Shown piece after piece: positions 25,622-29,510 of a stretch of 64,000 nt of DNA. The translations under genes and the position numbers were made by a program. A model generated the notes under the pieces. That model made no database searches and was not told the origin of the DNA. It saw only the letters and a program-made list of their open reading frames with translations. How positions within the stretch are numbered: the stretch's first letter is position 1; the number at the start of each line of letters is the position of its first letter. This DNA is from Macrostomum lignano (lineage: Eukaryota): contig NIVC01003124.1 of NCBI GenBank assembly GCA_002269645.1, positions 54,193-118,192 of the forward strand, in the 5' to 3' direction.

Positions 25622-26347
25622 TCAAGATTGTTCAATCAAGCGCACGCAATAATTTGCGGTACTGTCGGCGTTCACAGAAAATGCTTCGCCGCATCTACGG
25701 CTGCTGCTGGGTTGTTGATCGTCGGTTCGTGCAGCTTCCTTAATGATATTCTTTAGAACAGCCAGCTCGTCAACTGACTCAGGCCCAGTGACTCCAGTCT
25801 TTAGCAGGCCATCGATGTAGCGCTCACGGCTGTTCTCCGGCTTGTCGAATCTCAGCGGATGAGAGATCGCTCCGAGCTGCATGAGCAGTTGACAAGTCAT
25901 CAACCTGGCCACCCTGCCGTTTCCGTTTTTGTAAGGATGCAGCTTAAGGTACCGATGGATGAAATAAGCAGCAATGTAAAATTTATCATCCCTGCTCAAG
26001 GTCTTCGTCTGGTTGATGCGGCTTCCGCAAAGCTCGAACAACTCTTTCAGCTTTTCCTCAACATCGCTAACGGACAGGCCGGCAGCTCGAGACCCTTGCG
26101 ATGTGAACGATCCGTGCTTCGCTGGATCGTGCAGCACTCCGGCATCTGGCTTGCCTTTGTAGATTTCGCGATGGATTTTGTGCGAAAGTTCCAGATTGAA
26201 TTCGAGGAATTCGTCTGTCTGTCCGAAGACCAGTTTAACAGCATCTTTGATATTTCTGAGCTTTTCTTTGGTCACTTGGTCTCCACCGAATTCAGCTTCA
26301 CTTCGTATGTAATCTTCGTCGTTGGCAATTTTCGAAAATACAACCAT
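25622..26347 (-). CDS. Fic/Doc (Fido) domain protein, catalytic motif intact, intronless, 241 aa
   Basis: Uninterrupted ATG-initiated ORF. HPYKNGNGRVAR (25939-25904) matches HPFx(D/E)GNGRxxR and is preceded by the typical helix AAYFIHRYLKL. Confidence 0.88.
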   Translation of the reverse strand: MVVFSKIANDEDYIRSEAEFGGDQVTKEKLRNIKDAVKLVFGQTDEFLEFNLELSHKIHREIYKGKPDAGVLHDPAKHGSFTSQGSRAAGLSVSDVEEKLKELFELCGSRINQTKTLSRDDKFYIAAYFIHRYLKLHPYKNGNGRVARLMTCQLLMQLGAISHPLRFDKPENSRERYIDGLLKTGVTGPESVDELAVLKNIIKEAARTDDQQPSSSRRCGEAFSVNADSTANYCVRLIEQS

Positions 26348-26688
26348 TGTTAACGAATTTTACAAACGATTCTTAGCAGCTCATTAAACGGAACCAATAT
26401 AAACTCCTTGAAAATCTTGGTGCGGTGTTCTTGTCGGCGTATTTATACATGCAGCTGCGTTTCCACGGCTAAGCCGCGGAGAATTCCACTGCATATCCGA
26501 GGCCTTTCCGAGGAACAGCCGTGGAGCTCCCCTGAGTGGAGGAGGCGAATAACCGCGGAAATCCCGCGGAATTCTCTAGAGCAGCAAAACAATAGACTCT
26601 GCTAAAGCAATTCAATGAAGCAGTACTAAAATAGATTATACTTGACGAGTGCAATAATAAGTGTGCTCACTGGAAAAGTAGGCTCAAT

Positions 26689-26728
26689 CAAGGAATTCTA
26701 AATCTAAATCTAGGATTTAGAATTCCTT
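26689..26728. mobile_element. 40-bp palindromic mini-element with 8-bp TSD
   Basis: AAGGAATTCTAAATC / GATTTAGAATTCCTT inverted repeat flanked by GGCTCAAT at 26681-26688 and 26729-26736. Confidence 0.6.
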
Positions 26729-28169
26729 GGCTCAATTAATGCTTTGTTTTTGTCTGGGGCTTAAATTGATACAAAAAAAACAACATTACAATATAGTCTG
26801 CCAAACCAAGTAGAAGTTATAAAAAGATCTGAGCTCCAGAAGCTCGATCTGTGACCCTCATGGTGCCGTCTAATACTATCCAAAGACAGGGACTACTTAA
26901 GTTTAAGTAGTCCTTGTCCAAATGATTGTCAGAGGAAGATAGAAAAGTTCTCATTGGTGATTAAACAAACTCAAATTCTTAAAATATGAAGTCAGTAAAA
27001 ATTAACTTATATTAAAGTTCCTTATAGATGTACTTTAGTATTCCCAAACGCTTTGCATAAATAGCAAACCATCAGGCCAAACAATAAATTTCAGCGAGAA
27101 CTTTCAACTCACCGGCAATGCCACGGAAAATCCAGATTTTGTTGTTTCAAATTGACTGAAAAAAGGGGAACTTTGACGGGACTAGGGAGTCCCACGGGAA
27201 ATCCGTGGGTCTCCCGGTGTTTGTCAGTATCTAAAAATAGATTGTTCTCAAACGGCACTCAATAGCACAGTATATTCTGTGCTCAATAGTGAATTTGAGC
27301 TTTTCATAGTTGCTTTAACTCAGATGGTTTTTTGCTTTGCAGCTTCGATCCCATACTATAATTTTGTCTGATTTTTTAAAAATAATATAAAAGTAGATAA
27401 TTACCTATGTATTTATCTTTGGCGTTTTGTCCATAGACAATGTTTACGTGACACACAAGCTCAGCCATATGCGTTTATTTCCATTGTAATTATACTTTTA
27501 CCCAGACGCAATGAAACAATATTTTGGCCATTATTCCACAGTTTTTTTCCACAGATTTTTCCAAGATGAAAAATCAATTTGTCACCCAAAGTGAAACATG
27601 CACAGTTCTCAAAGCCGCAGTTTCCAAAGATGCTCGACACTTTAGCTTGATGATTTGGCACTGCAAAAGGAGTTGGTCTATGTTGAATGTTTTCTATGAA
27701 AGAGGAATACAGGTGCTCAAGTATAGTTGCCGAACTTACCATTTGAAAGATGCACGTCTTGGTTAAGTTGGCATGCGACTGATGAGCTTCGTCTGATGAG
27801 CTTCTTTGGTACCGCAGTATCCAAGCTGGGATTCTTTGGGACTGTCGTCTGCTCGACTGAATCGATTGGCCGCTTTCAGGCATCGTTTATAGCCGTCGAG
27901 ACGTTGAAGACTGCATGGTCGCGTTTTCTTCCTAGGTAGCGCCGCACGGTTCGCTCAGTCGTCGACAGGAAGATTTTTTCAATTAATAAGCGCGGCTGTT
28001 TGACGAGATGCACTATAGCCATAGTTATGGTCAAACTAAGCCACACAACTCAGTCGTCTATGGGTAAAACAACTCTTAAAACAGCCAATTGAAGCATGAT
28101 AAAAAGTGTGGAATAATGACTGAGCGCTGAGTGAAAGTATAAATACAATGGATAAATAATCAGCGGTCC

Positions 28170-28242
28170 CAGTGCGTGACAACGATTGTCTGGCGAGCGC
28201 CGGTAGGGGCGCGAGCCATAGACAAATCGTTGTCACGCACTG
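28170..28242. repeat. 73-bp inverted repeat / hairpin
   Basis: CAGTGCGTGACAACGATTGTCT pairs with AGACAAATCGTTGTCACGCACTG (one extra A); the internal sequence can pair further. Confidence 0.75.
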
Positions 28243-28778
28243 CGACGGCTGATTCTTTGCATTGTTTTTCTGTTTGACGATCCTACAGACAATGCATTGT
28301 TTATAGTAATGGATTGTTCTGCATTAAAAATGTGAATAATGATCGTCAAATTGCTAAACAATGCACTTGTATAGTATGCAACTTCGTTGAATTCTATCCG
28401 CAATGAGAGCTACGCGCGCTCGAGTTTTGGCCATTATTCAACTCAGTTGCATACTATAAAATCTACCATTGCGGATAGAAATAAGCCATATCGATGCTCG
28501 TATGAGAAATGCTATACTGCTTTGCTGCCTGCATGGTTTATAGATGAACCTTTATCGCTATTAAAACATACGATGTCTTTGTCTCTAAAATTCTGAAATT
28601 CTATAAACTTCTTTGAGCTTCCAAAACAACGCCGGCATTTCCACGGATTTTCCGCAGAGATGGAGAAGAATAGAGAGCATAGAGAGAGTTTAGAGTATTT
28701 ATAAACTGAAAAATTTTCTTTAAAAAAAGCTTGCCCAGAAAAAAAGAGAATAACGCGCAAACAATATCTAGCTACACA

Positions 28779-29510
28779 ATGGCTCCCAGCCTGAAAGTTC
28801 AAACGCGATTGAAAATGTACGCAGAAAATTTCCACGCCAAGCAAGAATGTCCAAACAGCCGCGCGAAAGATGGCTACGATCAGGTGTTCAACATCCTCAG
28901 CCTGCTGCAATTAGAGTCGGTATTTCGCTTCCTATTCGGCGACAATCTAAGCATTCCTAGAGGAGACATTTTTGGCCCAGCCCTGGCAACTAGAATTCGT
29001 CGCATGATCGACGCCAGACGACAGCAGCCATTGGACGAGCCGCGTGGTTCCAACTCTGCTTCCCGCACGATGCCCTGCGGATGCGGCTACAAGCGCAGTA
29101 GCGTAGAAATTCAGAACAATTTGCGACAAATTTTCTCGCGCTGCAGCAGCATGATCAACCAGAAGAGTAGCATGAGCACTGACAACAAGTTCCGGGAGGG
29201 CGCTAAATTTCTGAAAAGCTACGTAGACTTGATGCCAGAATGCGACATCGAACTGATTGTCGCTGAATTGCTCACTTCACTGTTGCTGATGCGTCTTGGT
29301 GCAATTTCTGTGCCGCTCTGCTACGGGCTGACCAACGACAACAACGGCATCAGAGCGAGTGCCTTCCGGCTTGTCAGGACTCCGTCTGTGCGCTCCGTCG
29401 CCACCACTGCTCGGATAGGCGGCAGTTCCCCATCGACTATTAGGCAGCTGGCGTTGGACCTGCAAACTGCTGCCTCAAGAACGAGGGTCCAACTGTGGGA
29501 AAGGGTATAG
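28779..29510 (+). CDS. Catalytically inactive Fic-domain paralogue (pseudo-Fic), intronless, 243 aa
   Basis: Intact ORF from ATG 28779. It aligns ungapped to the neighbouring Fic protein with 30/66 identities over the core, but the catalytic loop reads MPECDIELIVAE (29232-29267). Confidence 0.8.
   Translation: MAPSLKVQTRLKMYAENFHAKQECPNSRAKDGYDQVFNILSLLQLESVFRFLFGDNLSIPRGDIFGPALATRIRRMIDARRQQPLDEPRGSNSASRTMPCGCGYKRSSVEIQNNLRQIFSRCSSMINQKSSMSTDNKFREGAKFLKSYVDLMPECDIELIVAELLTSLLLMRLGAISVPLCYGLTNDNNGIRASAFRLVRTPSVRSVATTARIGGSSPSTIRQLALDLQTAASRTRVQLWERV

Follow-up and report, generated by a model that had tools for sequence, protein, structure and literature searches.

A 64,000-nucleotide stretch of the genome of the flatworm Macrostomum lignano (assembly GCA_002269645.1, contig NIVC01003124.1, positions 54,193 to 118,192 of the forward strand; the whole stretch is referred to below as the window) contains two divergently transcribed open reading frames (ORFs) for small Fic proteins: ORF1, which has an intact catalytic motif and whose exact protein is that of a gene called on this contig, and ORF2, a paralog in which the catalytic motif has been lost (Table 1). 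We show that the pair goes back to an old inverted duplication, specific to this lineage, of a small non-FICD Fic gene whose product is probably cytosolic. The evidence supports the view that ORF2 was kept by selection as a pseudoenzyme for most of its history, and comparison of the two sequences with those of their relatives suggests that ORF2 may inhibit ORF1 in trans. The reading we favor, though we hold it tentatively, is that ORF2 is a maintained dead paralog whose most likely role is to restrain a probably de-repressed ORF1.

An old inverted duplication of a small Fic gene

A preliminary description of this DNA had reported the two ORFs as a head-to-head pair, and both were found where it had placed them. 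ORF1 matches the Pfam Fic family PF02661 (E = 7.5e-10; 40 bits, against a gathering cut-off of 24), and Fic is its only Pfam domain at E <= 1. The ORF1 motif HPYKNGNGRVAR has the His, the GNG, and both Arg residues of the consensus HxFx(D/E)GNGRxxR, with two departures from the textbook form, Tyr for Phe and Asn for Asp/Glu. The Asn, at motif position 5, is shared with CccR, a Fic protein of class II from Yersinia and a demonstrated AMPylase with the motif HPFGNGNGRTVR (H192PFGNGNGRTVR203; PMC9755527), so that ORF1 is plausibly active, and we infer that it is a transferase of AMP or of a related nucleotide or phospho group. CccR is also the best PDB match to ORF1 by sequence (PDB 7xux, E = 5.7e-5), and the sequence match to FICD is confined to residues 95-169 (E = 0.006). 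The AlphaFold2 (AF2) model of ORF1 is a helical bundle (predicted local distance difference test, pLDDT, 76; predicted template modeling score, pTM, 0.75) with FICD as its best fold match in PDB (E = 2.7e-5); VbhT was also matched, 39 PDB fold matches have E <= 1e-3, and the 50 best listed are all Fic proteins. The C-terminal ~25 residues of ORF1 are disordered and unconstrained, with a pLDDT of 31-48 and a frameshift in the second locus described below. An N-terminal extension of ORF1 can be ruled out: the frame is closed by a stop 5 codons upstream of the ATG, and no AG lies between the two. A literature text search for the gene identifier Mlig013239 found no paper.

ORF2 has no match in Pfam, NCBIfam, PADLOC, or PDB sequences. 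BLASTP aligns it with ORF1 at 33% identity over 158 aa (E = 9e-11), and the gapless core of 30 identities in 66 residues, together with the motifs first reported for the two proteins, was reproduced exactly; a Fic family profile built without ORF1 also matches ORF2 (hhalign 92.6%, E = 4.5e-7). As had been described, the His, the GNG, and both Arg residues are gone from the catalytic loop of ORF2, and the motif, now MPECDIELIVAE, holds four acidic residues; the flap region has been remodeled, with an 8-residue insertion. The scaffold is far better preserved than the motif, ORF2 having similar residues in 13 of the 16 family-conserved scaffold columns as against 2 of the 8 motif columns, so that catalytic residues have been lost and fold-determining residues kept, as in a pseudoenzyme. 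A stop-free run of 231 codons has a probability of 3.7e-6 at the stop-triplet frequency of the spacer between the genes, so that ORF2 is not a chance ORF, and the GC content at third codon positions (GC3) is 0.63 in ORF2, compared with a GC content of 0.40 in the spacer.

Neither gene appears to be an ortholog of FICD/HYPE, a protein of ~450 aa with an N-terminal transmembrane (TM) anchor, tetratricopeptide (TPR) repeats, and a Fic domain with a TVAIEN inhibitory helix. ORF1 has only 241 aa and ORF2 231 aa; a Pfam search agrees with the initial observation that the TM and TPR regions are absent from both; and no E[GN] precedes the His of ORF1.

A second copy of the head-to-head pair lies on contig NIVC01000173.1 (locus L001), as expected from the known redundancy of the DV1 / Mlig_3_7 assembly, in which blocks are duplicated at an identity of at least 95% (PMC5730564). 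Synonymous divergence (dS) between the two loci is 0.01-0.07; between the cores of ORF1 and ORF2 it is saturated (dS 2.7, with a nonsynonymous divergence, dN, of 0.57 and a third-position identity of 0.35). The duplication that gave rise to ORF1 and ORF2 therefore long predates the split of the loci, and loss of the motif must also be old, since 25 of the 36 motif nucleotides differ between the two genes. Neighbor joining groups ORF1 with ORF2 as sisters in 72 of 100 bootstraps, in keeping with their initial description as local paralogs; the ORF2 branch is the longer one, and the rest of the tree is poorly resolved. The possibility that active and dead Fic genes are paired repeatedly across the genome was not borne out: the pair recurs only as the duplicate due to assembly redundancy, and in the other Fic pair found in M. 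lignano both genes are intact and stand in tandem.

Retention of the dead copy

The length of 241 aa first given for ORF1 is correct; the 243 aa given for ORF2 are probably too many. The ORF2 frame, which ends at 29510, could be entered at a TTG at 28731 (259 aa) or at an ATG at 28779 (243 aa), but the latter is not conserved, an in-frame stop taking its place in L001, and the homology of the loci gives way to indels 4 nt upstream of the ATG at 28815, whose context is AAAATG in either copy. The conserved start is thus the ATG at 28815, and the likely product, beginning MYAENF, has 231 aa.

From MYAENF on, ORF2 is intact in L001 and differs by 9 substitutions and no indels in 696 nt, where 6.9 indels would be expected (P = 0.001) from the 13 indel events found in 1309 aligned noncoding columns of the same block. 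The ORF1 protein of L001 is 94% identical to that in the window; the first 630 nt of ORF1 have no indels between the loci where 9.6 would be expected, and between-locus dN/dS is 0.35-0.55 (20 substitutions). The initial observation that the dead copy keeps both an open frame and a conserved scaffold is thus upheld by its codon run, GC3, scaffold columns, and freedom from indels.

Other observations count against the favored reading of ORF2, or tell little either way. Specifically, i) the 9 between-locus changes are spread 3:3:3 over the codon positions, and 7 are nonsynonymous, for a dN/dS of ~1.1-1.7; ii) away from indels, the substitution rate of ORF2 is that of clean noncoding DNA (~1%); iii) ORF1 is listed at both loci in the transcript-based GenBank annotation, and ORF2 at neither; iv) no ORF2 homolog was found in 5.8 billion proteins by a word-index search, so that there is no cross-species evidence; and v) the AF2 model of ORF2, a helical bundle (pLDDT 76, pTM 0.77) for which 46 of the 50 top listed PDB matches are Fic proteins, though weak ones (E of at least 0.07, template modeling score ~0.5), was built on a Fic alignment and so leans toward the Fic fold. 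The substitution test has no power, however, because only 9 substitutions are available and the noncoding DNA is itself only ~1% diverged; with so few changes in ORF2, and only 20 in ORF1, between-locus dN/dS was not used as a decisive test. A ratio near 1, which the preliminary description had named as the mark of a merely decaying duplicate, is therefore nominally what we observe, but on numbers too small to tell. Absence from the annotation is likewise soft evidence against expression, as the annotation was built from RNA-seq transcripts after low-abundance and repeat-overlapping transcripts had been filtered out (PMC5730564).

Some of these observations also lend weight to another history, in which ORF2 was long functional as a noncatalytic paralog and is now an unexpressed duplicate in the early stages of decay, its frame intact for want of time. 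A dN/dS of ~1, the even spread of changes over codon positions, the lack of annotation at either locus, and the upstream ATG that differs between the copies all point this way, as does the lack of a canonical AATAAA within ~280 nt downstream of the ORF2 stop. Early decay sits uneasily, however, with the absence of indels from both copies over the full 696 nt, with a GC3 that has not relaxed toward the background of 0.40, and with a start codon and context kept in both copies although the sequence just upstream is rich in indels; we regard it as a serious possibility but not a likely one. What can be retained of the initial proposal that ORF2 is a maintained pseudoenzyme is long maintenance in the past, as indicated by saturated dS, the intact frame, GC3, and the missing indels; maintenance up to the present is less secure, given a dN/dS of ~1 on 9 changes and the lack of annotation.

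Nor need retention of ORF2 have involved ORF1. A neofunctionalized Fic-fold scaffold with an unrelated role, for example as a binding adaptor, would be linked to ORF1 simply as the footprint of a local duplication, and its branch might well be much longer than that of ORF1, its active site wholly replaced and charge-reversed, and its flap remodeled, as we find for ORF2; the Bartonella Beps with degenerate Fic motifs provide a precedent for noncatalytic action. We nonetheless consider such a role unlikely, since the head-to-head layout has been kept ever since a duplication with saturated dS and is present at both loci, and since a scaffold of this kind would not predict the complementary losses of a Glu from ORF1 and of the catalytic loop from ORF2 (described below), although these losses are only marginally significant.

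Outside indel hotspots, identity between the loci is ~99% in the half of the region containing ORF2 (27400-29650) and ~93-97% in the half containing ORF1 (25000-27400); the contrast may reflect a gene-conversion tract.

A candidate inhibitory helix in ORF2

Most Fic enzymes are restrained by the Glu of an (S/T)xxxE(G/N) motif. In the relatives of ORF1, E(G/N) lies 124-142 residues before the catalytic His, as it does in CccR, where the inhibitory motif is S59ARIEG and Glu63 precedes the His by 129 residues (motif positions from PMC9755527). ORF1, by comparison, is without E[GN] from its N-terminus to His137; its Asn9 precedes the His by 128 residues, and the family hidden Markov model (HMM) would put the Glu of the inhibitory helix at approximately residue 0. 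In ORF2, Glu4 of the N-terminal Glu4-Asn5 precedes by 136 residues the position that corresponds to the His, inside the family range, and an extrapolated CccR alignment puts Glu63 opposite residue ~4 of ORF1 and residue ~3-4 of ORF2. The M. lignano paralogs A and B, a tandem described below, have inhibitory motif and catalytic loop in cis (ISELEG with HPFSDGNGRTAR in A, NSIEN with HPYRDGNGRTSR in B). Trans-inhibition is suggested because ORF1 seems to be without the brake, ORF2 seems to keep it, and A and B hold both brake and enzyme in one chain.

A scheme along these lines would run as follows. ORF1, having lost the autoinhibitory Glu of its relatives, would be constitutively de-repressed; ORF2 would be a pseudoenzyme retained for a noncatalytic role, most likely that of binding and restraining ORF1; it could act as a heterodimer partner, or could offer Glu4-Asn5 in trans to the free motif Arg of ORF1; and an ancestral class II Fic protein, enzyme and inhibitory helix in a single chain, would have been split between two linked genes. 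In the pocket of ORF2 itself, a Glu takes the place of the Arg with which the brake would pair.

Several points count against this scheme. The probability of E(G/N) falling in the family window by chance is p = 0.063; the inhibitory helix of ORF2 is assigned by spacing only, lies at the extreme N-terminus, and is missing the first Ser/Thr; both the HMM and the hhalign alignments stop short of the ORF2 N-terminus; the N-terminal alignment of ORF1 is weak, and E11, E17, or E19 could substitute in cis; and ORF1 lacks the Arg of the GxFR which precedes the flap in the family. Given the chance probability and the profile alignments which do not reach the ORF2 N-terminus, the argument for trans-inhibition is a weak one. 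In its strictest form, a self-inhibited class II Fic gene would have been duplicated, with the catalytic loop surviving in one copy, which lost the inhibitory Glu, and Glu-Asn being supplied in trans by the other, which lost the loop, as a eukaryotic counterpart, made of paralogs, to bacterial FicTA; we think so clean a division of labor distinctly unlikely. Such a split module could function as toxin and antidote, or could make AMPylation switchable.

Known systems, relatives, and surroundings of the pair

Among known systems, class II Fic proteins such as CccR and human FICD are like ORF1 in the respects given above, but ORF1 lacks the helix-turn-helix of CccR and has no E(G/N) in cis. The class I modules VbhT/VbhA and FicT/FicA resemble the present pair in that a Fic protein without an inhibitory Glu of its own, as ORF1 appears to be, stands beside a linked gene which may supply E(G/N). 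The class I antitoxin, however, is a small helical protein encoded in the same operon, whereas the candidate here, ORF2, is a full-length dead Fic paralog in an animal genome, encoded ~2.4 kb from ORF1 on the other strand. A bacterial precedent is provided by Fic1 and Fic2 of Campylobacter fetus, neighboring paralogs of which Fic1 binds and neutralizes Fic2 via the Fic1 inhibitory motif (PMC5651007). There, too, one member of a neighboring Fic pair has a degenerate core motif; but the degenerate protein keeps its His and is the toxin, the canonical autoinhibited Fic1 being the antitoxin, whereas in the metazoan pair the dead ORF2, which has no His, would be the inhibitor. The M. lignano genes A and B are also adjacent Fic paralogs, but they are arranged in tandem, both motifs are intact, and the inhibitory motif is in cis.

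The preliminary description had gone further, to a candidate toxin-antidote or immune-effector module. As a selfish element, ORF1 would be a toxin acting in gametes or embryos, and as an immune module would act against pathogens, with ORF2 as the antidote. Animal toxin-antidote elements such as peel-1/zeel-1 and sup-35/pha-1 of C. elegans and Medea of Tribolium do consist of two tightly linked, lineage-restricted genes, and the linkage of a probably de-repressed Fic enzyme to a possible inhibitor resembles the logic of bacterial FicTA. ORF1 also matches the defense-associated Fic model SoFic of PADLOC (E = 1.2e-11), although it is simply the Fic domain that gives this match. None of these animal elements is known to use a Fic enzyme, and of their features, which include parent-of-origin killing, segregation distortion, and presence/absence polymorphism, only linkage is shown for the pair. 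Nothing points to toxicity, parent-of-origin expression, presence/absence polymorphism, or mobility; the collinearity of both loci extends to their flanks; ORF2 does not figure in the annotation as an expressed gene; and Fic enzymes, FICD among them, also serve as ordinary regulators. A toxin-antidote or immune function is speculation, and we judge it highly improbable.

AMPylation by Fic enzymes in animals is known almost entirely through FICD, and no animal locus that pairs an active with a dead Fic gene is known from earlier work. The non-FICD Fic genes of M. lignano form a small family, and one member is paired with an old, catalytically dead paralog. The locus is not categorically new, inasmuch as Fic enzymes controlled by an inhibitory helix and pairs in which one Fic protein neutralizes another are already known; what the analysis adds is an ORF1 without E(G/N) next to an ORF2 with Glu4-Asn5 at family-typical spacing, although the spacing could be due to chance. 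If ORF2 does regulate ORF1, the pair would be the first case of eukaryotic Fic control by a paralogous pseudoenzyme, would capture a self-inhibited enzyme splitting into an enzyme-inhibitor gene pair, and could be tested in an organism with transgenesis and RNA interference; if ORF2 is silent, the locus would be an ordinary lineage-specific duplication, with one copy decaying.

An exhaustive search for relatives of ORF1 returned only 3 proteins at E < 1e-10, including the duplicated copy of ORF1 itself; next after that copy came P0002, which represents a M. lignano Fic cluster (Mlig009506 and related identifiers) with three assembly copies. The nearest relatives have E values from 6e-12 to 1e-6, and many carry HPFxNGNGRVAR. 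The eukaryotic ones are scattered over Balamuthia, Dictyostelium/Heterostelium, a chytrid, a basidiomycete, and the beetle Ignelater, and there are metagenomic proteins as well; when the family alignment was used as a profile, bacterial Fic proteins dominated the matches so heavily that taxonomic groups could not be resolved. Earlier in silico work recognized several separate eukaryotic Fic groups and ascribed them to horizontal transfer (PMC4454073). The Mlig009506 locus (NIVC01000042.1, L003 4113-10993) consists of the tandem of intact Fic genes A (upstream) and B, which are 32% identical. In gene A, a ~3.6-kb intron filled with minisatellite repeats divides two exons, the first of which contains ISELEG; gene B is a single exon, with NSIEN upstream of its motif. 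No dead partner was seen at the examined loci of ORF1 relatives.

Two of the relatives deserve mention on their own account. In P0005 (IMG metagenome) the motif reads RPYSRGNGR, with Arg for the catalytic His, so that catalytically compromised copies also occur elsewhere in the family. P0010, with the motif HPFSNGNGRVAR, is encoded on a 30.9-kb contig of Logan SRR24948434 (L006) which is densely packed and intron-free, and includes a subtilase and a faint match to Rpb5; the contig may come from a giant virus, hinting at a viral route for this eukaryotic Fic family.

Table 1. Positions in the window of the two Fic genes, their motifs, and the spacer between them
Feature	Positions	Strand	Description
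ORF1	25622-26347	minus	Single exon, 241 aa, Fic domain; annotated in GenBank
ORF1 catalytic loop HPYKNGNGRVAR	25904-25939	minus	Residues 137-148; read from the sequence
ORF1 SKIAND	26318-26335	minus	Residues 5-10; place expected by spacing for (S/T)xxxE(G/N), Glu absent
Divergent spacer	26348-28814		~2.47 kb, to the conserved ATG; from the sequence and alignment with the second locus
ORF2	28815-29510	plus	231 aa, catalytically dead Fic paralog; unannotated in GenBank
ORF2 N-terminus MYAEN	28815-28829	plus	Glu4-Asn5, candidate E(G/N) of an inhibitory helix; same in both loci
ORF2 degenerate, charge-reversed loop MPECDIELIVAE	29232-29267	plus	Residues 140-151; same in both loci

The spacer has TATA-like boxes ~95-115 nt upstream of each ATG, at 26440-26447 (minus strand) and 28700-28705 (plus strand). 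A TTTCCACGG element lies near both of these TATAAA-like boxes, in opposite orientations (26462-26470 and 28638-28646), and the ORF2-proximal stretch is 100% identical between the two loci. Only this copy of the spacer, and not that of the duplicated locus, has a 200-bp insertion (28148-28347), which includes a long near-perfect palindrome (~28160-28255) and has the look of a miniature inverted-repeat transposable element. An ORF within the spacer (27461-27883) has no Pfam match, no Rfam family matches the region 24900-31000, and a tblastn search with eight family members found no further Fic fragment or upstream exon in the window.

Contamination can be ruled out as the source of the pair, which on two large contigs has host genes and host satellites on either side. 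Nor is the pair likely to be transposon cargo: the two loci remain collinear through it and into its flanks, although no search was made for inverted or terminal repeats flanking it. The initial statement that every other gene here is split by repeat-filled introns was checked for two genes only, an Rpb2-like gene and an annotated 192-aa gene (~22453-24228), and goes no further than these. The former encodes an Rpb2-type second-largest subunit of RNA polymerase, with exons at 2144-2896 and 5264-5839, both on the minus strand (Pfam E = 1e-21 and 1e-47, respectively), and a 24-bp tandem array lies within and adjoining these exons. A 21-bp satellite, AAAATGAGTGCCTGCGGCGCT, fills the final 13.7 kb of the window with ~660 copies (50307-64000) and recurs in short arrays at 22659-22980 and, reversed, at 32052-32638, one of them inside the gene adjoining ORF1; the satellite gives rise to long spurious ORFs.

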